From Lepidodermella squamata (lineage: Eukaryota; Animalia; Gastrotricha), in contig JBLDXI010000017.1 in assembly GCA_047495785.1 (NCBI GenBank), positions 1,488,001 through 1,552,000 of the forward strand: a stretch of 64,000 nt of DNA, written 5' to 3'. How positions within the stretch are numbered: the stretch's first letter is position 1; every line of letters begins with the position of its first letter. Both the position numbers and the translations under genes were made by a program. The notes under the pieces were generated by a model. The model saw nothing but the letters and a program-made list of their open reading frames with translations, searched no databases and was not told the origin of the DNA. Positions 9,320-38,187 of the stretch are shown piece by piece.

Positions 9320-12300
9320 AACAACAGATCTAAGCGGCATTTGTCATTCACACTATTTCCGGATGTTCGTTACGCTCTGCATGCTCGGCTCACCTTCGGC
9401 CCGCCGGGCATGCGGGTAACACCCAGACGCGTCGTAAAATTAGAACTGAGCTAGGCCGCGGATAATCTTTCGCGTGTGTCGGCCGCGCCTTTGAAAGTGC
9501 GGTATGAAAACGGATTATCGCATTTTTGCGAAACGCACCGCGTCGTAAAATTTTCAAGCGCGCGGCTCTCAAGCCATAAAACGCAAACCCATTTAACTAC
9601 ACACTCATCACGCGCGTTGAGTGGCAAAATTCCGCGGAGATTGACGTTAGAAACTCGACATTTTTGACACTCACACCAACAACGGCGAATTGCTAAACTG
9701 AGCCGATTAGCCAACGATGAGTCCTATCAATTGCTACATCGCCCAGCCTTTGTTCTCGCAGCGCCCGGGTTCGAGTGGGAACTACTGCGCTAGACGATTC
9801 TAATCCAGTGAGTCGTTGCGGGAGGCACGGCGACAATGAGGGTGGGGTATTGAGATTTTATTTTCCTTTTCTTTCTTTGAAATTTACTTGAGATCGATGA
9901 GGTAATGATGATGATGAAAAAATTGATAAACGTGTTTCACAGCGTGAGGTGGCTGTTTACGCTCCAGCTTAAAACTTGTCGCGACGACACACGCAGCCAC
10001 TTGAAATCAACTTGTTTATTTTTCGAGATAACACAAACATCGACAGATTTGCAGCACCGATAGTGACCCGGACATGTTTGCGCCCCAGATTATTTTTTGC
10101 TGAAAGTGAAATGATTTGTTATGACGCAGCTCAGTGTCAGATAAACACCATAATCCGGACGCTAATTTGATAGCAAAACTTTGACCCGAATTTTGAGTGA
10201 CCTACTTAACGGTTGGGCGCCGCAATAAAATCGAACACGATTGATGGCTGTGGCTGGTTGCTGTCAGGGGCCGGCCTTCCGAAACAGCGAAACATAAAAC
10301 GGGTTTAATTACCCCTTGACCACCACGGTTTGGCGGGAGTAGCCGGGGCCGGAAGACGGCGACAAGCCTGGCTAATTACGGCGGGGTTTGATAACCAGCC
10401 AAAAAGGCGTGCGTTGTTTACGATTGCAATTAGTAGCAGTTAAGGAGGCTGCTGCTGCCGCTGATACCTACCTCGTGGGCGGGTTTGTTTTGACACAAGA
10501 TAACACAGCCGTCGTCTGAACTTTTACCGCCAACACTACCACGCGCGGCCCATGAGAACGCGAACAAATGTCAAAGGACCACTACCTGTGAACTCAATTA
10601 AGGTGGCTTGGCAACAACAACAACAAATAATTACTGCTTCTGACTGCGGAAAAAAAACACCTGAATTGATGCACAACAATTTTTTATTACTGTAATATTG
10701 ATGTAAATGTTCACATAATAATATTATGATTTTTGTTGACATACTGAAGCTCAGCAGATTCTTGCCGCCTTATACACAAAAACAAGAACTTCAGCACACA
10801 TAATTTTTCATTGTGAGGACCCGCGCTCAGAATAATGTTAGGTATTGCTTTTCGCGAATATAGACATGTATTTGCGATAATAATATCATATTACTAGTAA
10901 TTATGGAAACAGAAAAAATGAAATGAAACAATTCATTCCTTCAATCAGCAGTTATTCCACTCCAATATAGGGTATACACAGATTTGAGCTGAATAGATTA
11001 AGGCGGTTATAACTAGACTACAGAAGACATCAGACCGGATTTATGAGTTTGCAAAATTATGAACACCCTATCATCACTTATTTCCCCGATTTTTAAATAA
11101 GAGAGACAGATAGAGAGACAGTCAGCCAAAACAAAAAAACACAGTGAGCGAACAAAAACGACGACCTTAAATTACACGCAGTGATGAGAGACAAAAGCAG
11201 ACAACAATTTGTTCTTCGATCCTACTACACTGTTAAATTAACGAACGCGAATAATTTAATCGTGAGACGGAATTTCAGTTTTTCATCATATCGACTTGAA
11301 AATTGATACCATAATTGAAAATACAGGTGAATTCGTTGCGAAGTTATTTTTCATGCGAAGAAATCATCGAATGGGAACATGGAACTAATAAGGCGGATGG
11401 AATGGACATTATAGTTTATCAGAAGAATATAGATTTCTTTTTTTTGCAGCAGCAGATGGGGTCGATTAATAACGTTAGAATAAATTTTCAGGAAGAAGCG
11501 CGAAACTGGTGATGATTGTTAAGTAGTAGATTTTGTTTTTCTTGTTTAGAAGATTCGATTCCAACACATTTCAAGTAAATGCACAGAGCGTAAAATAAAA
11601 ATCACACAAGTTAGTTTTATATTAGACGCGTTATGTAGCAGAATATTATGGATTTTTTTACACACACTTTACGCAATAATATTAGATTCATGAATATATA
11701 TTTTGAATATATTTATATATAATATTTTTCAGTAATGGTACGAATAATAACAGTAATTTTTGTTAATGTGCGATTATTATATTATTATATTATACAAGAC
11801 AGGTGAAATGTTCGTAACGTATCGAATGTAGAAGTAAAAAGCGTTGCCGCCTTAAAATTTCACGGAAACTTCAAAGCTTCAACGTTTAAAAACCAGAATA
11901 TTTCGCCTTTTGTTTTACGGTGCCGTGTGGTGGCGGTGCAAAAGACAAAATTAACAACTCAACAAGAATAATGGTACACGAAGAATATATAGATTTCACA
12001 TCTTTTTGAAATTTGAAATATATCGGAATTAAATTTATCTGGAAAAACTCCGACGATACAAATTTTCGAACCCCTTCAACGCATATTTACACGAAAAAAC
12101 GACGACCCGTTTTATTACGAAGGGGTCAAAAAGAGCAGCTAACAATATAATATTTAGATTTATGTATCAATATATATCTCTATTGAATAATTTTCCATTA
12201 TATACACGTATAACACCGCCGTAAACGCCGCAAAAATTTAAGAAATGAGGAAGAAGACGGAGAAAAATATCATAATCAGATTGTGCGATTCTCATCAGAT

Positions 12301-25194: not shown

Positions 25195-27036
25195 ATGTCT
25201 TTATTAACGGGAATTGTTTTCTTCATTATTAGGCTTTTAGTTTTGATAATGGTGACTAAAATTGCCGCAATGACAGCAGGGAACAATGCGCCTGTGAATA
25301 TCGCGCGGTCGCTTTTTCACCTGCTACTCGCAGCCAGATTATGCGCAGTTCTGTTTTCAAACATCTGGGACTGTGACGAAACGTACAATTACTTCGAACC
25401 GGCTCACTTTTTACTCTACGGATACGGTTGCCAGACATGGGAATATGCGCCTGAATTTGGCCTGAGGTCCTACGCTTACCTACTGGTACATCTCGCAGCG
25501 GTTTACGTTCCTGCCGTTGTCCTGCAGGCGTCGAAAACATTCGTTTTCTACTTCATCCGATTTTTCTTGGTGATGCTAGAAATTTGGACGCAAACTAAAT
25601 TTGTTACAGCTATTTCGAGTAAATTCGGAGGCACGATTGGCGATATGACGTTGCTCTTAGCAGCGTTCTGCCCCGGTTATTTCCAAGCTTCGACGGCTTT
25701 TCTCCCCTCTTCAAGTGCTATGGTGTTACTTCAATTCGCTTTGACAGCGTTTATGGAACGGAAATATTACCAAACTGCAATTGCTGGTGCTTTTTCCGCA
25801 TTCCTAGTCTGGCCTTTTTCAGCCGCGTTATACATTCCAGCGGCCGTGGCGATTCTATTTGACCTAAAAACGAAATTTATCGCATATGCGGTGAAACTTT
25901 TAGTTCTGGTGTTGTTATTCGTCGTTGCTCCAATCGTGTTTATCGATACGTTATTTTACGGAAAATACGTTGCCGCAGCTTACAATATTGCTGTATACAA
26001 TTTCCTGGCAGTTGACGAGAAGCGCGGGTCGCATATCTACGGAACAGCACCGGTCTCATATTACCTGATGAATTTATTTTTGAATTTCAATTTCGCCCTT
26101 GTTTTTTGCGCTTTCGGTGTTTTCGCGCTGATTTTTGTGTCGCGCAATTTTTTCGCCCCTCACGCTGTTGGGCAAGAGCGAAAATCTGTGGCGTTGGTGC
26201 TTGTATCCACCTTACTTGTTTGGCTCGGTATTTTCTTCCCACAACCGCATAAGGAGGAACGATTTTTATACCCGGTTTACCCGTTATTTTGCTTAACGGC
26301 CGCTGTTGGAGTTCAATACCTGACCACGGTTATCTACCGAATTTTTCACGCTTTCGCGAAATTTCGTGCTTTTCTTGCCGATTGCGTTCAATTGGGTTTC
26401 ATCGCCGTATTTGTTCTGCTTTCTTTGAGCCGCTGTGCTTCGTTATATTTCAATTACCACGCTTCGATGGATGTATATCTTCGATTTTCGGAATCGGTAA
26501 AATTACCGGCTGGTAATACCGGGTCGACTTACAATTTTTGCGTCGGGCGTGAATGGCACCGATCTCCCGGCCATTTTCTGCTGAATGACCACCGCATTCG
26601 ACTGCGCTTCATCGAAAGTGCTTTTGAAGGTCTGTTACCAGGCCATTACCATGAAAATTTGACAATTGCAAACGCAACTCGAGCCTCGAGACCGGATATG
26701 AACGATTTGAATCGCGAGGAGAAAAGCCATTACGTGCCGGTTTCAACTTGCCATTTTCTAGCTGATATTAACATGGAATCGCTGGGCGATAAACCTGGGA
26801 AGGAACCGAATTATGCGGCCGACAAATCGTGGACAGTTTTGATTCGACTACCGTATCTGGCGACAGTTGACCGGGAAGAAGTTGCATTACCAGCCTGGAA
26901 ATCGCTGTCAAATCGTCTGCTTCGTGCTTTTTATGTACCGTATTTTTCGCCGCTGGTTACGCAAAGCTCATTCCGTGACTACGTGATTCTGCAAAATACA
27001 GCATTGCTACCCCTGAAAATTTCCTCAACTCTATAA
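25195..27036 (+). CDS. ALG9: Alpha-1,2-mannosyltransferase ALG9; true start may be Met at 25249 or 25270
   Basis: IWDCDETYNYFEPAH, QTWEYAPEFGLRSYAY, TAFLPSS, QPHKEERFLYPVYP and CVGREWHRSPG motifs; multiple TM segments. Confidence 0.95.
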   Translation: MSLLTGIVFFIIRLLVLIMVTKIAAMTAGNNAPVNIARSLFHLLLAARLCAVLFSNIWDCDETYNYFEPAHFLLYGYGCQTWEYAPEFGLRSYAYLLVHLAAVYVPAVVLQASKTFVFYFIRFFLVMLEIWTQTKFVTAISSKFGGTIGDMTLLLAAFCPGYFQASTAFLPSSSAMVLLQFALTAFMERKYYQTAIAGAFSAFLVWPFSAALYIPAAVAILFDLKTKFIAYAVKLLVLVLLFVVAPIVFIDTLFYGKYVAAAYNIAVYNFLAVDEKRGSHIYGTAPVSYYLMNLFLNFNFALVFCAFGVFALIFVSRNFFAPHAVGQERKSVALVLVSTLLVWLGIFFPQPHKEERFLYPVYPLFCLTAAVGVQYLTTVIYRIFHAFAKFRAFLADCVQLGFIAVFVLLSLSRCASLYFNYHASMDVYLRFSESVKLPAGNTGSTYNFCVGREWHRSPGHFLLNDHRIRLRFIESAFEGLLPGHYHENLTIANATRASRPDMNDLNREEKSHYVPVSTCHFLADINMESLGDKPGKEPNYAADKSWTVLIRLPYLATVDREEVALPAWKSLSNRLLRAFYVPYFSPLVTQSSFRDYVILQNTALLPLKISSTL

Positions 27037-27120
27037 AAGAGATACTAAAAACATTAACAAATTAAATTTTGAGAATTGGTTTTTGAAAATTTTATTTATT
27101 TTTATGTAGGTTTTTTATAT

Positions 27121-27855
27121 ATGACGTCCACTCGGAACTTCAATGACCTGCCTTTTGACTGTCTCTATCAGATTTTCGGGTATTTGAGCTACCACGAAAT
27201 CGAACAATTTCGACGGATCAGCCGCCAGATTAATACAATCTGTCATTTGTTCCTGAAATCAGGCGCCGCAAAACTACATACGAAGGTGATCCAAATTCTG
27301 ACAAAACTCAAAGGCTATCCACCGCAGCGTGATTTGCCAGATTTAATCAACGTTGCAGAGATTGTTAAGTTGGATCTCTTCATAATTGGCATGGCTCTTG
27401 ATCGGTACCTGACATTTTGCCAGTCGACATTTTACCCTGGTAAAATGCTGGATGAAATGTTTCAGATAGTGGCGAATATCGAGAAATTGATTAATCAGAT
27501 TTCTGATTGGGGCATACGTCGCCATTCCTTCACTTATTGCCTCATCATAGCAACAATGGCTAGGGTAAATAAGTTGAAAGACCTCTCGAAGATGGCCACG
27601 GACCATATTAAAAACGTCATGATACCGAGAGTGAGTGGTCAAATTACGTCCCGCGCTGCCTTGGAAGCCATCATTGAAATTCCAGCGCCGCTGACTGGAA
27701 CTGTCGGCAAAAAGTTAGTCTCGCCACCGAAGGATACGTGGCATTCGAATTTATCGACTGCGGTAGCTGTGGTCCTGGGCATTATCGCGTTGTTTGCGTT
27801 TGGAGCTGGCTGTTCCTTTGCCGGAGCGTATCTGGCGCTGAAATCGATTGAATAA
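27121..27855 (+). CDS. FBXO28-like F-box protein copy 1 with C-terminal hydrophobic helix
   Basis: F-box LPFDCLYQIFGYLS and FYPGKMLDE core; ends AVAVVLGIIALFAFGAGCSFAGAYLALKSIE. Confidence 0.85.
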   Translation: MTSTRNFNDLPFDCLYQIFGYLSYHEIEQFRRISRQINTICHLFLKSGAAKLHTKVIQILTKLKGYPPQRDLPDLINVAEIVKLDLFIIGMALDRYLTFCQSTFYPGKMLDEMFQIVANIEKLINQISDWGIRRHSFTYCLIIATMARVNKLKDLSKMATDHIKNVMIPRVSGQITSRAALEAIIEIPAPLTGTVGKKLVSPPKDTWHSNLSTAVAVVLGIIALFAFGAGCSFAGAYLALKSIE

Positions 27856-28151
27856 TAGACAGCTGCAAGACTTGGATCTTGTCTGTGAACTTGAAATTAG
27901 CTTCTCGAGAGGCATTTTAAGGTTTGGATTTAGTTCGCACTCTTAACCGAGTCTTTCAGGAGCTCTATCTTCGCGCCGGAGATTTCGCTTTGCTGCATGT
28001 TTTGAGGCTACAAGACAGATTTCATCAAAATCGTCGTTGTTGGTTGAAATCTCACAGCTTCGAGAGGAATCAATTTCGACCGCATCTCGCTATCAGAATC
28101 GTAGACTTCATGCGCTTTTGCTCTAGTCACTAAACCGATATGTATTTTCTG

Positions 28152-28965
28152 TAGGGGTGAGCCGAAATTTCTGGTAACCGGGTTGCCGAATTTTCAAGGC
28201 TGGATTCGGTTCGGTTCGGTTCGGTTCGGTTATCCTAAAAAAAACCGAATTTCAAACCGAATTTTACTTATTTCAGATTTGATTGTAGCTTGTTTTATTT
28301 ACAGTTTGCAGTCGCAGTTGTAATTAAGCACAGTTAGATAATTTTTACAGAAGATTAGCATCTCTGCTTTTCGCCGTTCAATGAGCATCGAATTCTGACT
28401 CCCGATTCTGAGCAAATTCTCGGTTTTATCGTGACTCGCGCCTGAATATTAAAAAATTAAAATTTAACCCTGTCGGGGTGTATACTCCCATTTTACTCCT
28501 ACTTAACGGCGTACAGCTAAGATGAAAATAGGCGGTAGAAAAACAGGCATTAGTGCGCGCGCATTCGCAGTAAACGCACGTGATCACCTGTACGCGCTAC
28601 GCTATTGGATACGCAACAAAACCGGCGCGCGTCTATCATTGTAACTGCATTGCGATTGGCTGAAAATCACGCAAACATTGCCTAATAATTTAAAACTGAG
28701 GCTGGTCAAATTGTGCGCCATATTGTGCGCCTATAATCGTATTCGTCACGCTATTGGTCTACGCTGACTTGACTCGCGCGCGATCGAAATCCTATTGGGT
28801 TAGTGTTTCTCGCGCGGCAAAACGCACAGTCACGTGAGCCAATGTTTAACGTGACGCTATTAGTTGAAAAACCGATCGGCGAAGGCGAAGGCAGCACGCG
28901 TTAATGTCAGTTTTAGGTATCGCGATTCTTTTCGGTTCTAAAGTTTACGATTCGGCTCACCCCTA
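28152..28965. mobile_element. Non-autonomous hAT-type element (MITE), 814 bp
   Basis: TIRs TAGGGGTGAGCCGAA...TTCGGCTCACCCCTA; perfect 8-bp TSD ATTTTCTG (28144-28151 and 28966-28973); (TTCGG)n subterminal repeats. The paralogous empty site is near 30281-30295. Confidence 0.93.
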
Positions 28966-29226
28966 ATTTTCTGTTTACTTTTTCGTCTTGTTTTCGTCTC
29001 GCTTTATCTTTGCTGATTTTGTAGTCATTTTGCATTCGTACTTCGAAAGGTGATGCCTGTCATTTTTAAGCAGGTAGATGCTTTTTGTCAATTTTTTGTC
29101 ACTGGTTTCGCAAATCTCATTCCGTGACTACGAGATCTCAACTCTAGCTCAACTGTATAAAGAAGAGACTAAAAAATTATTTGCTAAATTTTCACTTTTT
29201 GTTTTTAGGTTTTATTTGTATTTATT

Positions 29227-29961
29227 ATGACGTCTACTCGGAAGCTCAACGACCTACCTAATGACTGTCTCTATAAAATGTTTGGGTATTTGAGCTACCA
29301 CGAAATCGAGCAATGTCGACTGATCAGCCGCCAGATTAATGCTCTATGCCATTCATTGCTGAAATCAGGCGCTGAACAAATACGAACAATAACGCGCCGA
29401 ATCCAGACAGATTACAGAGGCCATCCACGGCAGCGTGGATTACGAAATTTACTCGCTGCTGTAGATATTGTTGAAGATGAACTCTTATCATTTGGTTTCG
29501 CTCTTGATCGATACCTAATAACTTGTCACTCAACGTTTTACCCTGGAAAAGTGCTGGATGAAGCGTTCCGGATTATGTTGAATATCAAGAAGTTGATTAA
29601 TCAGATATCAGATTGGAGCGTACCCCAACAGCCCTTCACTTATTTACTTATTGTAGGAACAGTGGCTAGGACACATAAGTTGGATGACCTTTTTAGAATG
29701 GCTGTGAAACATATTGATAACGTCATGATACCGATTATGAGGAAAACCCATGGACACATTTCTCCCCGCTCTACCTTAGCAGCCACCATCGAAATTCCAG
29801 CGCCGTTGACTGGAACTGTCGGCAAAATGTCTAACTGGCCACCGAAGGAGGCGAAGGAGGAGATAGAGATTCGAAGGTATGGACTGCTGCAGCTGTGTTC
29901 CTGGACATTATCGCGTTGTTTGGAACCAACTGAGCCTTTGCCGGGACATATCTCGCGCTGA
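29227..29961 (+). CDS. FBXO28-like copy 2; the TM-coding tail is frameshifted and decayed (soluble variant or pseudogene)
   Basis: The F-box and core are intact. The TM-homologous DNA is out of frame and, in its old frame, has an Asp codon and a TGA. Confidence 0.75.
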   Translation: MTSTRKLNDLPNDCLYKMFGYLSYHEIEQCRLISRQINALCHSLLKSGAEQIRTITRRIQTDYRGHPRQRGLRNLLAAVDIVEDELLSFGFALDRYLITCHSTFYPGKVLDEAFRIMLNIKKLINQISDWSVPQQPFTYLLIVGTVARTHKLDDLFRMAVKHIDNVMIPIMRKTHGHISPRSTLAATIEIPAPLTGTVGKMSNWPPKEAKEEIEIRRYGLLQLCSWTLSRCLEPTEPLPGHISR

Positions 29962-30560
29962 AAGTGATTAAGTCATAGGCAGAGACAGCTGCAAGACTTG
30001 GATCTTGTCGGTGAACATGAAATGAGCTTCTCGAGAGCATTTCAAGGTTTACACTTGGATTTAGTTCGCACTCTTATCCGAGTCTTTCAGAAGCTTAGCT
30101 TCGCGCCGGAGATTTCGCTTTGCTGCATGTTTTGAGGCTGCAAGACAGATTTAATCAAAATCGTCGTTGTTGGTTGAAATCTCACGGCTTCGAGAGGAAT
30201 CAATTTCGACCACATCTCTTTCATCTTGCTATCAGAATCGTAGACTTCATGCGCTTTTGCTCTAGTCACTAAACCGATATGTATCATCTGTTTACTTTTT
30301 TCGTCTCGTTTCATCTTTGCTCCATAGTTGTGCTGATTTTTTAGTCATTTTGTAATCGTTCTGTAAAAAGTGTAGCCGGTCATTTCAGGCAGCTCAAGGC
30401 TTTTTGTAAAATCTTGTTCTTCGAATTTTTTGCCACTGGTTACGCAAAGCTCATTCCGTGACTAAGTGATCTCAACTCTAGCTCAACTGTATAAAGGAGA
30501 GACTAAAAAATTATTTGCTAAAATTTCACTGTTTGTTTTTAGGTTTCATTTATATTTATT

Positions 30561-31280
30561 ATGACGTCCACTCGGAAGCTCAACGACCTACCTAATGACT
30601 GTCTCTATAAAATTTTTGGGTATTTGAGCTACCACGAAATCGAGCAATGTCGACTGATCAGCCGCCAGATTAATGCTCTATGCCATTCATTGCTGAAATC
30701 AGGCGCTGAAAAAATGCGAACAAAATTGCGCGGACTTCAAACGGAACTCAAAGGCCATCTGCCTCGGCGTGCATCAGCCAGAACCAACGACATTGCATCT
30801 CATTTAATCAGCAATGTCGATTCCGTTGGCCTTGAAGTCTCACGCGTTGGCTTCGCTCTTAATAAATACCAAAGAACTGGCAAGTCGACCTTTTACCCTG
30901 GTAAAGTGCTGGATGAAGCGTTTCGGATAATTGCTCATGTCGAAAAGTGGATGCCTCAGATCTCTGATTCTCAACCGCCCTCGAATTATTCCCGAGATTG
31001 GAAGTTGATGGTTGAGTTGGGAGACCTTTGCACTATGGCTAAGGAGCATATCGAAGACGTCCTCATACCGAGTAAGCAGCAAAGATCTTCGCTAATTTGT
31101 TCCGATTGTTGCTTAGATATCGACTACTCTGACTACTCTGACTGGCCACAGAAGAAGACATGGCATTCGAATTTATTGATTGCCGCAGCTGTGGTTCTAG
31201 CCATTATCGTTTTATTCGTGTTTGGAGCTGGCTGTGCGTTTGCTGGGACGTATCTGGCGCTGAAAGTTGTGAAATCATAA
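30561..31280 (+). CDS. FBXO28-like copy 3 with C-terminal hydrophobic helix
   Basis: F-box, LPRRASAR, FYPGKVLDE; ends LIAAAVVLAIIVLFVFGAGCAFAGTYLALKVVKS. Confidence 0.87.
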   Translation: MTSTRKLNDLPNDCLYKIFGYLSYHEIEQCRLISRQINALCHSLLKSGAEKMRTKLRGLQTELKGHLPRRASARTNDIASHLISNVDSVGLEVSRVGFALNKYQRTGKSTFYPGKVLDEAFRIIAHVEKWMPQISDSQPPSNYSRDWKLMVELGDLCTMAKEHIEDVLIPSKQQRSSLICSDCCLDIDYSDYSDWPQKKTWHSNLLIAAAVVLAIIVLFVFGAGCAFAGTYLALKVVKS

Positions 31281-31584
31281 CCATTTGCACGCATCTGTCT
31301 TTCGAACAGATATCTTTGAGCGAAGGCCTGATCTATGTAGTCATTGTTATAGTCTTTTTGTATTCTTAGTCACTTTTGTATACTTTACTGATTAATGTTT
31401 AATTGTCTTACTCGTGTTTTGTATTTCCGTATTTTATGCATTGCTCAATTTTTAACTTTGTGATTTCGTTACTACCTCTAAAAATTTCATCTCTTCCTTA
31501 ATAATAAAACGAGAGGCTCAAAATGAACAAATTAAATTATGTTAAAATTTCATACTTTCCTTTTAGATTTTATTTATATTTGCC

Positions 31585-32307
31585 ATGGCGTCCACTCGGA
31601 ATTTCAACGACCTACCCAATGACTGTCTCTATCAGATTTTCGGGTATTTCAGCTACCACGAAATCGAGCAATTTCGACTGATCAGCCGCCGGATTGATTT
31701 AATATGTCACTCAATGCTCAGTTTAAGCGCTGAAAAATTACAAGCGAAGGCGTTAAGATTTCAGACGGAACTTAAAGGCCGATTACCACGGCGCGAATCA
31801 GCCAGAAGCAACAGCATTGCATCTCATTTACTTGGTGATGCAAAGTCTGTTAAATATAGTCTCTCACTTATTGGCTCCGCTCTTGACAAATACCGAAAAA
31901 CTTGCAAGTCGACGTTTTACCCAGGTAAAGTGCTGGATGAAGCCTTTCGAATCATGGCTTATATCGAAAAATGGACGGCTCAAATTTCTGATTCGAGCAT
32001 ATCTCAGCCACCCTCGACGTATTCACGAGATTGGGATTTGCTGAATGAGTTGGGAGACCTTTGCACTATGGCTACGGAGCACATCGAAGACGTCCTGACA
32101 CCGAGTGAGGGGCAAAAATCTAGCCAAATTTCGTCCCATTTTGTCATTGATTTTGGCAAAAAGTTAGGCGCCCCACCGAAGGAGACTTGGCCTTCGAATA
32201 TATTGATTGCGACTGCTGTAGTCCTGGGCATTATAGCGTTGTTCGCGTTAGGAGCTGGCTGGTCTTTTGCCGGGACGTATCTGGCGCTGAAATTTACAAA
32301 ATTATAA
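31585..32307 (+). CDS. FBXO28-like copy 4 with C-terminal hydrophobic helix
   Basis: F-box, LPRRESAR, FYPGKVLDE; ends with a hydrophobic segment followed by KFTKL. Confidence 0.87.
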   Translation: MASTRNFNDLPNDCLYQIFGYFSYHEIEQFRLISRRIDLICHSMLSLSAEKLQAKALRFQTELKGRLPRRESARSNSIASHLLGDAKSVKYSLSLIGSALDKYRKTCKSTFYPGKVLDEAFRIMAYIEKWTAQISDSSISQPPSTYSRDWDLLNELGDLCTMATEHIEDVLTPSEGQKSSQISSHFVIDFGKKLGAPPKETWPSNILIATAVVLGIIALFALGAGWSFAGTYLALKFTKL

Positions 32308-32627
32308 CCGTTTGTTTGTGTCTTTCAAACAGGTTTCTTTGACCGAAGGCCTGATCTGTGTAGTCATTTTCGTTTTTGTAGTCCTTTTTTGTATGCTTCC
32401 AGGTTGCCATATTTGACAACTTGAGGTCTTATGTCAAATTGTCTTGCTCGTTTTTCATTCCGTATTTAACACAATGCTCAATTTTTAACCAAGTGATTTT
32501 GTTACTACCACTAAAAATCTCATGTCTACCTCAACTTTATAAACGGGAGACTCAAAAAAAAACAAGTTTAATGTGAAATTCGTCAAATATTCGCTTTTGC
32601 CATTTTAGATTTCATCTTATATTTTTA

Positions 32628-33368
32628 ATGACTCGGAAGTTTAGCGACCTGCCCTATGACTGTGTCTATCAAATTTTCGAGTATTTGAGCTACCACGAAA
32701 TCGAGCAATGTCGACTGATTAACCGCCAGATTGATTCTATATGCTATTTATTGCTCAGTTTGAGCGCAGAAAAATTACAAGCGAAGGCGCTACGATTTCA
32801 GGCGGAACTCAAAGGCCATTTGCCACGGCGTGAATCAGCCAGACAAGGTCACATTGTATCTGAGTTACTTAGCGATGTAAATTATGTTGAATGTAAACTC
32901 TCATCTATTGGCTCCGCTCTTGATAAATACCGAAAAACTTGCAAGTCGACGTTTTATCCTGGTAAAGTACTGGATGAAGCGTTTCGGATAATTGCTCATG
33001 TCGAAAAGTGGATGCCTCTGATCTCTGCTTCTCAACCGCCCTCGAATTATTCACGAAATTGGCATTCGATGGTTGAGTTGAGAGACCTTAGCACAATGGC
33101 TACTGAACATATCAAAGACGTCCTGATACCGAGTGAAGAGCAAAGATCTAGCCAAATTTCGTCCCATTTTGTCATAGATTTCGGCAACAAGTTGGACTTG
33201 GCAAAGTCTCCTGACCTCCTTTCCACAAAAAAGTCACCGAAGGATACTTGGCCTTCGAATATACTGATAACGACTGCTGTAGTCCTGGCCATTATCGCGT
33301 TGTTCGCGTTCGGAACTGGCTGGTCCTTTGCCGGGACGTATCTGGCGCTGAAATTTACTAAATCATAA
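32628..33368 (+). CDS. FBXO28-like copy 5 with C-terminal hydrophobic helix
   Basis: F-box, LPRRESAR, ELRDLSTMA; ends with a hydrophobic segment followed by KFTKS. Confidence 0.87.
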   Translation: MTRKFSDLPYDCVYQIFEYLSYHEIEQCRLINRQIDSICYLLLSLSAEKLQAKALRFQAELKGHLPRRESARQGHIVSELLSDVNYVECKLSSIGSALDKYRKTCKSTFYPGKVLDEAFRIIAHVEKWMPLISASQPPSNYSRNWHSMVELRDLSTMATEHIKDVLIPSEEQRSSQISSHFVIDFGNKLDLAKSPDLLSTKKSPKDTWPSNILITTAVVLAIIALFAFGTGWSFAGTYLALKFTKS

Positions 33369-33702
33369 CCGTTTGCACGCGTCCGTCTTACGAACAGGCT
33401 TTATTCAGCGAAGGCCTGATCTGTGTAGTCATTTTTGTGTTTTTAGTCTTTTTGTTAGTCATTTTTGAATGCTTCCAGGTTGTCATTTTTAGACAACTAG
33501 AGGTCTTATGTCAAATTGTCATGCTCTTTTATCATTCCGTATTTAACACAATGCTCAATTTTTAACCAAGTGATTTTGTTACTACCACTAAAAATCTCAT
33601 GTCTACCTCAACTTTATAAACGGGAGACTCAAAAAAACAAGTTTAATGTGAATTTCGTTAACATTTCGCTTTTGCCATTTTAGATTTCATCTTATATTTT
33701 TA

Positions 33703-34374
33703 ATGACTCGGAAGTTTAGCGACCTGCCCTATGACTGTCTCTATCAAATTTTCAAGTATTTGAACTACCACGAAATCGAGCAATGTCGACTGATTAACCG
33801 CCAGATTGATTCTATATGTCATTCATTGCTCAATTCAGGCACTAAAAAGATGAGAATGAAATTGATCGGAATAGCGACGGAACTCAGACGCCATTTACCC
33901 CTGCGTGAATCGTCCAGAAGCGTCCACGTTGCATCTGATTTACTTGACGATGTAAATTCTGTTCAATATAGACTCTCACGCGTTCGCTCCGCTCTTGATA
34001 AATACCGGAAAACTCTTCCGTCAACGTTTTACCCTGGCAAATTGCTGGATGAAGGGTTTCGGACAATAGCGAATATCGAAAGTTTGACCAATCAAATTTC
34101 TGATTTTAGCATATCAAAGCCGTCTTCGACGTATTCACGAAATTGGAAGTTGTTGGATGAGTTTAATAACATTTACGCAATGGCTATGGATTATATCGAA
34201 GATGTCTTGATACTGCGTAAGCCGCAAAGACCCGTGCAAGTTACTTCCCACGTTTCCTTAGCCGTCGGCAACATGCCACCGAAGGTTACGTTGCTTTCGA
34301 AGATATCGACTGCGGCAGCTGTGATACTGGCCATTATCGCGTTGTTCGCGTTTAGAACTGGATCTTCCTTGTAA
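33703..34374 (+). CDS. FBXO28-like copy 6 with a shortened hydrophobic tail
   Basis: F-box and FYPGKLLDE; ends AAAVILAIIALFAFRTGSSL. Confidence 0.83.
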   Translation: MTRKFSDLPYDCLYQIFKYLNYHEIEQCRLINRQIDSICHSLLNSGTKKMRMKLIGIATELRRHLPLRESSRSVHVASDLLDDVNSVQYRLSRVRSALDKYRKTLPSTFYPGKLLDEGFRTIANIESLTNQISDFSISKPSSTYSRNWKLLDEFNNIYAMAMDYIEDVLILRKPQRPVQVTSHVSLAVGNMPPKVTLLSKISTAAAVILAIIALFAFRTGSSL

Positions 34375-34556
34375 ACTCAAGGTCTTTCTCCAAATTATCT
34401 TATTTTTTCTTTATATTTGCCGTATTTCACGCAATGCTCAATTTGTAAGTGTGATTTTGTTACTACCTCGGAAAATCTCATCTACCTCAACTTTAAGCGA
34501 GGGACTATTTTGTAAAAATTTACCTTTTTCCTAGTAGATTTCATCTTATATTTATT

Positions 34557-35757
34557 ATGACTTCCTCTCGAAAGTTCAACGACCTGCCCTACGACTGTCT
34601 CTATCAGATTTTCGGGTATTTAAGCTACCACGAAATCGCGCAATGTCGACTTATCAGCCGCCAGACTAACGCAGTTTGCCATTCAGTGCTGAGTTCAGGC
34701 GCTGAAAAATTGCGAATTAAATTGAACCGAATTCAGACGAAACTGAAGGGCCAATTACCGCGGCGTGAGTCAGCCAGACGAGGCCACATGGCATCCGATC
34801 TACTCGAGGTTGTCAATTCGGTTGAAAATCGATTCTCAATCATTCGCCTCGCTCTTGATCGCTACCTAATAACTGGCCAGTTGACGTTTTTTCCCGGAAA
34901 AGTGCTCGATGAGGCGTTTCGGATATTGACGCATATCGACAATTTAGCGGCTCCGATTTCTGATGGAAGCCCGCCACCGCCGCCCTTCACTGCGCTGCAA
35001 AAAGTGACTATGCTCCGCGATTTGAGAGACCTTTCTACCATGGCGTCGGAACATATTGATGACGTCATTTTACCGAGTATGAGGCAAAGACCTGTTTCGG
35101 TTGAACCAATGATAAAGCGACTGATTTCGTGCCGATCTCACGCTCACGATTCTGGTAAAAAAAAATATTAAGCTGGATTTTTTAATTTCTTAATTTTTAC
35201 GAATTTTAGTCGCATCCTGTTCACCTGAGAAGAGCAGCGTTGTTCTATCCCCTTTATTTTCTTCACCAAGCACTCCTACTACGTCGAATGCTGCCGCAGC
35301 AAATGACAACGCGTCTACGTCAAATCTCGGACCCGATGATCCTATCCTACGCTTGTGCGGTCTTTTCTTCGAGCAGTTCCGCAGCATGTCCGGTCATATG
35401 GAAGAGCTGAAAAATCAACAGAAACAGGCCAATTCGAAAATTTCACAATTGTGCAACGATATGAATTTATTGAAACGGCAACTTAGCCAGGAGCAGCTAT
35501 TTTCCGCTAGTCTCGCGAAAAAAGTTGAGGTGGCTGAGGGCGCGTTGGCTGAGATGCGTCGATTGACGATGAATTCAGGCGCCGATACAGCCATCCAACA
35601 CGTTTGCGTCGCAGAGCCGGTTAAACAGCAACGGGCTGCGTCGAAGCGTAAAGTCAGCGAAACGGACGCGGGCAGCTCTAGCGGCGGTAAAAAGGCAGCC
35701 AAAAGCGAGCCGTCAGATCTGTCTGGTCGCCGGGTTACTCGAGCCTCTAAATCGTGA
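34557..35757 (+). CDS. FBXO28: FBXO28 orthologue-like full-length copy; exons 34557-35154 and 35210-35757
   Basis: QLPRRESARRGH...VENRFS...FFPGKVLDEAFRIL...LRDLSTMASEH matches the FBXO28 core. Exon 2 encodes a coiled coil and basic NLS-like tail, with no TM. Confidence 0.88.
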
Positions 35758-36186
35758 TTTATAATAAAAACGAACGCTGATTTATTCGCTCAAATTTTTA
35801 CAAGTTTGACCTATAATTTGATGTCTTTGATGAAACTGTTCTCCTTTAAGGTGGCTGCTCATCTCATTTTTTCGAAACTAAACACCAGACCTGATGATCC
35901 ATTTCTTGTCTCTAGCAAATCAGAACTTTTGATATATAATGAATCAATTATTACAGCTGTATGATGGAAGTTATTTGTTGTGGCGTGAACATGTTTTTCT
36001 TGAAATTGGGATGTTCAAAAATAAATCAACCTATAATATGTGCATCAAGAACGGCCAGATTTTTATTATTCGATTCGATTACAAAAGAGCACGATAAACG
36101 GGAAGATTTCGCGAAATAGAAAGCGCAGTTGGTCATCCGGAAATCTCAGCGGGACCTGCGATACTGAACCACCAGGGTTGAAACAA

Positions 36187-38187
36187 TCAAGCCATAGCCG
36201 ATGGCGGTTTAACCTAGAAAAAGCGCGTAAGGTGGAGTTTTGAAAGAACAGAATGAATTACCACAATGGTGAACTGTTTCCGGCTCATCTCAGTGAGCAG
36301 GCGCCGATCAGTGAGGCAGAGCGTGAGAACGCTGACTGCGGCGAGACCTACACCCCCAAAAGCGATGTAAACGCCGAGGCCGAACTCGGGACTGACTGCA
36401 TTACAATCGTACTCTTCTATCAGTAATACGAGCCCATTGATCGCCGAGGCACCTTTTATATCGTTGAAATGTCTCGCTGAGCTTCGTAAAATTAACAAGG
36501 ACTTACACGCAAATAAATTGAGGAAGATAGCGCCTTGGAGCGGCAATCCGTAGGAATCTTCTTTCTTTCGCGCGAACAATATAATGAAGACGAAAAGGGC
36601 GACTATTGCCACGAATTCGCCCACCGCCGCTAGCACCATTAAAGCCTGGACAGTTTGATACCGGATCGGAGTCAAAACTTGAAAAAAATCGGTGAAATCA
36701 ATAATTTTAAAAGACCATAATATACTCACTTGCTCCCGTAACATAGCCTGCAACAATCGGTACAACAGGGGCGCCACCGGCCATTTTCGTTATTTTCAAG
36801 TTGCGATCACCAATATCGATGAAGCCCTTGCGAGTAATGTAATCCGTGGTCACGTTAACCATAATAGCCTGAGTACTGTATAACAACTGAGTCCAGTCCA
36901 ACATCGGATTCGCCTGGTCAATGTCAGTCGCGTTGTAAACTTGGATTATTGATTCGTTCCAGTTACTTAACGTCCAATTATAGGAAATTCCAATAAAATA
37001 ACCTGAAAATAGCAGAACCTAAGCAGGCATTTACAATTAAGGTGACTATTCTAACCTCGGCGAACAAAAAGCCGCTGCCCAGGGTCTATCACATGACCCT
37101 GAAGACCAGTTCCATCGGACTGAATGTCATTGCTTACAATAAAATGATAACGCCGTCCGATTTTTTTCCATAGCGATATCTGAACTGTGCCGGATACATT
37201 CGCGTAAATGTCCCATTGCCGGACGACGCCGTCGCAATCGATTTCAAACTCAGGAAATAGAAATAGGCCGTATCCAGTACCATCAACTGGCTGTATGGGT
37301 AGTTTCCCGTTGACCACTTTCACGATGGACGGAGGGTCCCAAGCCCGACCAACCGTGCAAATTTCCCAGGTCGAACCAGGTAAGCAGCGATCTACATGCA
37401 TTCATTATAATGATTTACCGAATGAAAAACAAAAAACTCACCGGTTGGTGTACATATTGGTGGAACGGTCCAAGAACCATTTATGCAATATGACTGAAGA
37501 GTGTAGTCTCGTGCTCCAACCAAAGAATAATCTCCGTTACTACACGAATAAGTCGTTCGAGCGAATGATATAGTGTCGTATTTGTACGGCGTATCAATTT
37601 TATAAGTGGCGCCTCGAATATCAGGTGGGAGCGGGCAACTTATTGCTAATAAAAAATCAAATTTTATCAAATCAAATTTGACGCGATTATAAATTACCTT
37701 CGAGCGTATTTTCAGTTGGCGCGACGGTTGTGGTAGGAGCTGGAGAAATTGTTTTCACATACCCTGTTCGGTAATAATCCCGGCCAGGTGGTGGCGATAC
37801 AGCTGTTGTTGTAGATGGAGGCATCACCGTTGTCGTAAAGTTGTCCAAGTCCGGAATTTGAAACCGATTTTTTTCGAAATCGAAAAAATTATCGTTGTAT
37901 TTCAACACGTCGTAGCAATAATCAGGCCGTTTTCTCGATTGGAATAAGGTTAGGGAACTCCATGAAGAAGTCGAGTACCACGTGACGTCCATGCAACCCT
38001 GCCAAATGCCGAAGGTGGCTCGCAATTTTCCGGCCGTTTCAATCGCCACGTTGGGCATGTGATCGGCTTCAAAGCTGGCGGCTGGGTCATAGACATAAAT
38101 TAACCAGTCGGGCCGAATGAGGCAATAAACGAAAAGGCCGAGAACGCAGCAACATTGAATAACACCGGCAGCTGCGATTCTCAGCAT
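36187..38187 (-). CDS. Claudin/PMP22-like 4-TM protein with a Thr/Pro stalk, a Sushi/CCP domain and a further domain in extracellular loop 1; about 7 exons
   Basis: TM1 + PDW, FGIWQGC...C signature; Sushi CPLPPDI...YSC...LVG...CINGSWTVPPIC; TM2 YQTVQALMVLAA; TM3; TM4 FGLGVYIAFGG; probable last exon VKPPSAMA*. Some exon boundaries are approximate. Confidence 0.7.

Follow-up and report, generated by a model that had tools for sequence, protein, structure and literature searches.

Tandem FBXO28-family genes with candidate C-terminal membrane anchors in the gastrotrich Lepidodermella squamata

Introduction

Substrate receptors of Skp1–Cul1–F-box (SCF) ubiquitin ligases are found at organelle surfaces in animals and yeast, as exemplified by FBXL4, FBXW7-beta, FBXL2 and Mdm30/Mfb1, and the F-box families of nematodes and plants have expanded by tandem birth-and-death, with a conserved F-box, a variable substrate-side domain and gene conversion. 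FBXL4 is reported to restrict the tail-anchored mitophagy receptors NIX and BNIP3 (10.1101/2022.10.12.511867). The F-box protein CFB of Arabidopsis associates with membranes via a C-terminal helix and binds ASK1 via its F-box (PMC5853388), and FBXO28 interacts with MYC in the nucleus (PMC3721474). In addition, membrane segments can arise de novo from T-rich sequence (PMC7005711). Here we describe an array of seven tandem F-box genes of the FBXO28/pallbearer family at positions 27121–35757 of a 64,000-nucleotide (nt) stretch of Lepidodermella squamata DNA (assembly GCA_047495785.1, contig JBLDXI010000017.1, positions 1,488,001–1,552,000, forward strand; hereafter the window). Six of the genes end in a 3' segment that the seventh lacks, and in four of these six it encodes an intact hydrophobic tail. 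We consider it likely that the tailed copies are tail-anchored, membrane-tethered SCF receptors, produced by a lineage-specific tandem expansion accompanied by birth-and-death.

Results

Six of the seven F-box genes share a C-terminal tail

The array lies on the + strand, and the list of open reading frames (ORFs), a Pfam scan and the alignment place an F-box at the N-terminus of each of its seven ORFs (c1 to c7). The F-box or F-box-like Pfam match covers residues 5–44 in 7/7 copies (18.9–30.7 bits), and the F-box columns of the alignment are mostly invariant. When the window was searched by tblastn with c1, c3 and c7, neither an eighth copy nor a further fragment came to light. The ORFs of c1–c6 are unbroken and stop after the helical core that follows the F-box; their 3' segment is common to all six and absent from c7.

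We assessed membrane segments by Kyte–Doolittle hydropathy with a 19-residue window (KD19) and signal peptides by inspection. A hydrophobic run of 30 amino acids (aa), followed by a short end of 4–5 residues, was found in c1 (27121–27855, 244 aa; F-box, helical core, linker and then the run at aa 211–240, nt 27751–27840; end KSIE), c3 (30561–31280, 239 aa; run at aa 205–234, nt 31173–31262; end KVVKS), c4 (31585–32307, 240 aa; run at aa 206–235, nt 32200–32289; end KFTKL) and c5 (32628–33368, 246 aa; run at aa 212–241, nt 33261–33350; end KFTKS). The KD19 maxima of these copies were 2.38, 3.14, 2.73 and 2.53, respectively. In all five tailed copies, c6 included, the tail itself is the KD19 maximum, and the maxima of c2 and c7 stay below 1.6. 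Since the first 45 residues are taken up by the F-box, no signal peptide is evident. Thus, a single C-terminal hydrophobic segment with a short end is present in c1, c3, c4 and c5, partial in c6 and missing from c2, and the tails of c1 and c3–c5 have the sequence properties expected of a tail anchor. We fetched 192 FBXO28 relatives, and not one had a convincing C-terminal hydrophobic segment.

By DNA alignment, all six duplicates have homologous tails. In c2 (29227–29961, 244 aa), the F-box and core are intact and the tail is decayed: it lies out of frame, having gained 11 nt, lost 6 nt and acquired a stop, and a remnant of the membrane segment at 29871–29975, containing an internal stop, matches the c3 tail with an expectation value (E) of 7.7e-7. 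The tail of c6 (33703–34374, 223 aa) is a truncated version of the common one, diverging after 17 hydrophobic residues (nt 34303–34353) and ending in RTGSSL. The presence of homologous tails in all six copies, including the c2 remnant, points to a single tailed founder with four intact descendants and two damaged ones. c1, c3, c4 and c5 carry the motifs TWxSN and FAGxYLALK unchanged in their tails, and a G-x-G is conserved in the middle of the 30-residue run.

Much of this architecture had been anticipated by a sequence-only reading of the same DNA, which described seven tandem paralogues, the last alone with the FBXO28 layout and an intron, and six single-exon copies ending after the core with a different 3' segment. 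The ORFs, the Pfam matches and a spliced contig (see below) agree with the former statement, and the uninterrupted ORFs confirm the latter. Hydropathy and inspection likewise support its count of five copies with a hydrophobic segment, four with a Lys-containing end and none with a signal peptide. Our alignment adds two refinements: c2 is not a copy of another kind but carries the same tail, frameshifted and stopped, and c6 carries the same tail, truncated. The search that it proposed for FBXO28 proteins with a membrane segment yielded no C-terminal segment in the 192 relatives and no tail-like protein among the clusters searched.

c7 is the FBXO28 orthologue from which the duplicates derive

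c7 (34557–35757, 381 aa) consists of exon 1 (34557–35154), a 55-nt GT..AG intron in phase 1 (35155–35209) and exon 2 (35210–35757), and the exact splice joint is carried by a contig of the X1 data set (introduced below) at a depth of 78. Exon 2 encodes an S/T/P/A-rich linker, a coiled-coil-like region and a basic end, without a hydrophobic segment, and matches the C-terminal half of an orthologous protein (P0001) with an E of 1.9e-19. The coiled-coil region and basic end occur in c7 only among the seven copies. In the X1 allele, 3 nt (GCA) are added at 35295, an in-frame length polymorphism in the alanine-rich linker of exon 2.

With c5 as the query, FBXO28/pallbearer proteins of molluscs, arthropods, echinoderms, hemichordates and nematodes were matched at 30–36% identity, always within the first two thirds of c5. 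A search of 1.84 billion representatives with a seven-copy profile gave 376 matches, all over the core and none past profile position 216; just one of them, P0001, fell below 1e-30, and the rest had E values of 1e-27 and weaker (profile positions 6–216). An alignment of 70 family members shows the core motifs LPRRES, FxPGKVLDE and ELRDxSxMAxEH after the F-box. LPRRESxR is near-invariant among these 70 proteins; LPRRES is kept in c3–c7 and lost in c1 (27310–27340) and c2 (29415–29440).

We modelled c5 with AlphaFold using the same 70 members. The model has a mean predicted local distance difference test (pLDDT) score of 80.5, exceeding 90 over most of residues 11–170; in it, a disordered linker connects the all-helical core to a helix at 210–228. 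Its only matches were the FBXO28 models of mouse, human and cow, with E values of about 1e-8 and template modelling scores of 0.58–0.59; the match to the human model (E 2.9e-8) covers human residues 58–279. No solved structure similar to c5 was found, either by sequence or by fold. Since c1–c6 stop before the coiled-coil region and basic end, they are derived paralogues of the FBXO28/pallbearer family rather than canonical members.

P0001 is a 355-aa protein from three ENA metagenome contigs (L001–L003), which we take to represent a relative. In all three contigs, an ALG9-type mannosyltransferase gene is followed 60 nt downstream by one FBXO28 gene and then, on the opposite strand, by a claudin-like gene. 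The same neighbours flank the array in the window: the ALG9 gene upstream (25195–27036, + strand; a single ORF of 613 aa; Pfam Glyco_transf_22, E 4e-88) and, downstream, the start of a claudin-like tetraspan gene (36214–36777, − strand), a synteny anchor identified from the ORF list and the gene order in L001–L003. The ancestral locus therefore had a single FBXO28 gene between ALG9 and the claudin-like gene, and six extra copies now lie between ALG9 and c7. Over the core, c7 exon 1 and P0001 share 72% identity, and the ALG9 protein of the window is 60% identical to that of L001. The orthologue of the relative (L001 9649–10716) is an unbroken ORF of 355 codons, in contrast to c7; either this lineage acquired the 55-nt intron or the relative lost it.

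A maximum-likelihood tree places P0001 and c7 at the base and unites the six duplicates in a single clade (99/99), which splits into (c1,c2) and (c3,c6,(c4,c5)); measured from the split, the paths to the duplicates are about ten times as long as the path to c7. These results show that the array arose in this lineage from c7 and that the duplicates evolved much faster than c7 did. No related array was found among JGI metagenome contigs, and neither the c3 nor the c5 protein has an exact match on record. The assignment to the FBXO28 family, already made in the sequence-only reading, is thus borne out by sequence, profile and model matches. So is its claim of a lineage-specific expansion, because the relative has a single copy in the same synteny; the phylogeny that it called for, with one clade of duplicates and c7 and P0001 at the base, points the same way.

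The amplified unit includes the 3' end of ALG9

The spacers of the array are mutually homologous. Each ends in ~160 nt that match the final ~130 nt of the ALG9 coding sequence together with the ALG9–c1 intergenic stretch (84 nt), and the unit profile matches 26905–27111 in nhmmer with an E of 2.3e-22. By tblastn, the last ~40 codons of ALG9 (aa 572–611) are recognizable in decayed form in every spacer, on the + strand at 29093–29137 (c1–c2 spacer), 30391–30471, 31418–31492, 32451–32522, 33513–33599 and 34460–34486. The remnant in every spacer places the left breakpoint of the duplicated unit inside ALG9, at about 26905. The amplified unit therefore comprised the ALG9 3' remnant, the intergenic stretch with its pyrimidine–AG site, the F-box gene with its tail and ~170 nt of 3' sequence, and the tail was already part of it at the time of amplification. 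No coiled-coil remnants were detected in the spacers. The c1–c2 spacer corresponds to the c2–c3 spacer plus an insertion of ~817 nt at 28153–28970, which has no second match in the window, no ORF of at least 60 aa and no Rfam match. Rfam likewise gave no match anywhere within 26000–37000.

About 22 nt upstream of every F-box ATG there is a conserved pyrimidine tract ending in AG (TTTAG or CCTAG; e.g. 27100–27108 and 34520–34534), without a paired donor; such a tract also occurs in L001 at 9590–9648. ALG9 and the first F-box gene are 84 nt apart in the window and 60 nt apart in the relative. The tracts and the close spacing fit spliced-leader trans-splicing of an operon-like run, and no spliced-leader sequence was seen in the contigs.

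Synonymous divergence (dS) is very uneven along the genes. The F-box dS is 0.03 for c2–c3 and 0.08 for c5–c6, with near-identical segments at 29227–29370 and 30561–30704 (c2/c3) and at 32628–32765 and 33703–33840 (c5/c6), whereas the dS of their cores is about 0.5 or more, indicating recent gene conversion limited to the 5' end.

The tail has no detectable source

No source of the tail was found elsewhere in the window, and a search of 5.8 billion protein clusters with the tail region, like one of the relative's locus, gave no similar sequence. We considered several nearby origins. The intron and exon 2 of c7, by splice-site loss or frameshift, were suggested by a match of GGCAAAAAG to the c7 donor GGTAAAAAA. 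The local alignment scores of the tail against 35120–35330, however, were within the null distribution of 1128 random window segments, and the unit profile found nothing in c7 by nhmmer; this origin was thus rejected. The last membrane helix of ALG9 (LADCVQLGFIAVFVL vs IATAVVLGIIALFAL) gave tblastn E values of 0.8–2, no better than those for other membrane helices encoded in the window; moreover, the same DNA matched ALG9 a second time in a different frame. The claudin-like gene was also not significant (tblastn E 0.4–2.5).

One 11-mer, CGTATCTGGCG, is shared by the tails and ALG9. It encodes YLA in the same codon phase in the four intact tails (e.g. 32276–32286) and in ALG9 (26852–26862), where it oddly precedes the remnant boundary by about 45 nt. 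As a junction microhomology it was rejected, since the flanks are unaligned, the position is not colinear with the ALG9 remnant and the blastn E is about 21–23; the sharing is probably due to chance. Taken together, the searches leave the tail as an orphan segment without a detectable source.

Transcript-like contigs retain the tails of c3–c5

Two further data sets cover the locus. We regarded X1 as RNA; this was a guess, supported by the c7 splice. X2 is DNA-like, with flat depth and no joint. The X1 data are contigs, for which the c3–c7 region was mapped and c1 was judged by sampled words only, 90% of which occur in X1. The X1 depth was 33–68 over the bodies of c3, c4 and c5, 6–15 over c6 and 65–115 over most of c7, and about 6–13 in the lowest spacer bins. 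Contigs cross the tail and stop codon of c3 (30928–31407) and of c5 (32989–33356 and 33327–33637), and a c4 contig (31891–32295) spans the full hydrophobic run, ending 10 nt before the stop codon. No tail-skipping joint was present in the X1 contigs of c3–c5. Retention of the tail in the mRNA, a check that the sequence-only reading had put forward, is thus supported for these three copies, whose contigs keep the tail unspliced.

X1 also contains low-depth joints between opposite strands, ~100 nt apart, at 32377/32475 in the c4–c5 spacer and at 33764/33867, 33865/33967 and 33871/33971 inside c6. These may be artefacts of cDNA synthesis or assembly, or may reflect antisense or hairpin RNA.

The F-box and tail are constrained

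We estimated the ratio of nonsynonymous to synonymous divergence (ω) by the Nei–Gojobori method. ω was 0.2–0.6 for the F-box and 0.4–0.9 for the helical core, with a pairwise core dS of 0.31–0.72 among the four intact ORFs. For the tail, with about 35 synonymous sites, ω was 0.36–0.77 between intact copies and about 1 or more in pairs with c2. The sequence-only reading had named a tail ratio near 1, together with diffuse or nuclear localization, as one outcome that would speak against it, and the intact tails are not neutral by this measure. Between the window and the X1/X2 alleles, the synonymous and nonsynonymous variants numbered 9 and 2 in c7, 4 and 5 in c4, 1 and 1 in c5, and 0 and 6 in c6; the variant 32303 T>C changes the end of c4 to KFTKS in the X2 allele. 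The hydrophobic runs of c3–c5 contained 0 variants, versus 11 in the adjoining untranslated stretches.

We then simulated random change at the observed pairwise divergence. An open and equally hydrophobic tail was retained with P 0.03–0.08 in 5/6 pairs, and for a 240-codon ORF the probability of outlasting 0.15–0.3 neutral changes per site was at most about 0.02. This low neutral survival indicates that the intact copies have been maintained by selection. The F-box and tail are constrained, and the core is relaxed or diversifying. c6, with its low X1 depth and exclusively nonsynonymous variants, is probably decaying.

Discussion

A proposed route to tail-anchored SCF receptors

All six duplicates descend from a founder copy in which the coiled-coil region and basic C-terminus had given way to an orphan end of about 45 codons. 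The unit was then amplified, with gene conversion and the decay of c2 and c6 coming later. We propose that the tails of c1, c3, c4 and c5 act as tail anchors: with no signal peptide and a hydrophobic run 4–5 residues from the end, these proteins fit the accepted definition of tail-anchored proteins, and insertion is expected after translation, leaving the F-box and helical core in the cytosol at the membrane surface, accessible to Skp1/Cul1. By the rule established for mammalian and yeast tail anchors, high segment hydrophobicity with low tail charge leads to the endoplasmic reticulum (ER; PMC5450235). The segments have a grand average of hydropathy of 2.4–3.1 and the ends a charge of 0 to +2. 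This combination of a hydrophobic tail and a weakly charged end favours the ER, to which the tailed copies are probably bound, with the mitochondrial outer membrane as second choice. The tethered copies would serve as SCF substrate receptors whose fast-evolving core picks membrane-proximal targets, and c7 would keep the ancestral soluble or nuclear role; the loss of the coiled-coil region and basic end would have removed from the duplicates the part that the sequence-only reading tied to nuclear or chromatin localization. The conserved F-box (ω 0.2–0.6) is the one feature pointing to Skp1 binding and SCF assembly.

Several findings weigh against the tail-anchored receptor interpretation. The F-box scores of c2 and c4 lie just below the gathering cut-off of 20.5 for PF00646, the near-invariant LPRRES motif is gone from c1 and c2, and two of the six duplicates (c2 and c6) are decaying. 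Hydropathy is the single basis for membrane insertion, and the predicted helix of c5 covers aa 210–228 at a pLDDT of ~66–70, with the last 16 residues unmodelled. The RNA label of X1 is a guess, its data are contigs and some of its depth falls in the spacers. The core ω of 0.4–0.9 and the nonsynonymous-rich variants of c4 (4:5) and c6 (0:6) fit relaxed constraint equally well, and the tail ω is drawn from few (about 35) synonymous sites.

Some of these points would be expected if the duplicates were by-products heading for loss, a truncated copy having read into T-rich non-coding DNA and being transcribed through the operon-like signals carried with it, with no selected function. The breakage of c2 and c6, the core ω of up to 0.9, the share of nonsynonymous variants (6/6 in c6 and 5/9 in c4) and the orphan state of the tail, for which no relative was found, are all compatible with this, as is the T content of the spacers (41–46%), since T-rich sequence readily encodes membrane segments (PMC7005711). 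We nevertheless consider it unlikely, because four ORFs remain intact at a core dS of 0.31–0.72, a divergence that each would survive neutrally with a probability of at most about 0.02; ω is 0.2–0.6 in the F-box and below 1 for the tail in all intact-copy pairs, the four intact copies share TWxSN and FAGxYLALK without variation, no variant falls in the hydrophobic runs, and the depth of the copies in the presumed RNA run is near that of c7.

The other two alternatives concern what the constrained proteins do. If the tailed copies were membrane-tethered decoys or regulators, holding Skp1 or the partners of the FBXO28 core and thereby limiting c7 or SCF generally, the F-box would be the best-conserved part and the coiled-coil region and basic C-terminus could be dispensed with, as observed; a decoy, however, has no need of several diverging cores, and branch lengths of the duplicates' core about ten times that of c7 fit changing partners better than a fixed one, making this improbable. 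We give similarly little credence to a C-terminus that does not span the bilayer, be it a monotopic or hairpin segment (e.g. on lipid droplets), a small-xxx-small motif for homo-oligomerization or a quality-control degron. Thirty residues are long for a single span, G-x-G is conserved mid-run and the modelled helix reaches just from 210 to 228, but the first 19–20 residues alone have a hydropathy of 2.4–3.1, typical of a membrane segment, and the second part, about 10 residues, is too short for a return span.

The tail-anchored receptor interpretation thus stays the likely one. A bolder version, in which a de novo tail anchor turned a soluble SCF receptor into a diversifying ER-tethered family that surveys membrane targets and was expressed at once through operon-like signals, is distinctly doubtful as a whole; its possible targets would be foreign or misassembled proteins at the ER surface. 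A quality-control or defence role for the copies is conjectural. Of the earlier proposal of membrane-tethered SCF adaptors, the architecture, the lineage-specificity, the transcript coverage of c3–c5 and the constraint stood, and the decay of two of the six duplicates tells against it.

If the tails do anchor, the locus would offer a dated example of a ubiquitin-ligase receptor changing its cell compartment, would add a tail-anchored class to the animal F-box proteins and would be a tractable case of a new membrane anchor on an old gene. Its value is enhanced by the adjoining ancestral gene, the one-copy relative for comparison and the decayed copies, which serve as internal neutral controls.

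Comparison with known systems

The array resembles vertebrate FBXO28 and Drosophila Pallbearer in the N-terminal F-box and helical core motifs and, in c7, also in the coiled-coil-like region and basic end. It departs from them in that c1–c6 lack the C-terminal half, carry a hydrophobic tail absent from the 192 fetched relatives, are multi-copy and evolve fast. The closest match in layout is the Arabidopsis CFB group, with its N-terminal F-box, no classical interaction domain and a predicted membrane helix near the C-terminus. The likeness is of layout alone: no sequence relationship was noted, and the plant family is not derived from FBXO28 and is not tandem. Plant CFB-like proteins were not noticed among the named c5 matches, the profile matches carrying no names.

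The organelle-surface receptors FBXL4, FBXW7-beta, FBXL2 and Mdm30/Mfb1 differ in having N-terminal targeting or membrane segments or lipid anchors, rather than a tail anchor at the C-terminus, and in belonging to other F-box subfamilies. Compared with the nematode and plant F-box expansions, the present one is small (six copies), starts from a usually conserved gene and involves a change of predicted compartment. As with membrane segments arising de novo from T-rich sequence, the tail is an orphan on a T-rich strand, for which the window, the orthologous locus and protein databases offered no source; unlike them, it would be a C-terminal extension of an old gene rather than a whole new gene, and its de novo origin is putative. 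The sequence-only reading ranked the locus as a candidate undescribed system, which overstates the case, since plant CFB already has a C-terminal membrane segment and the copies are a derived gene family, not a multi-part system. Taken together, the array is a variant on the FBXO28 family, on F-box proteins with a C-terminal membrane segment and on birth-and-death arrays, and not a new kind of system.

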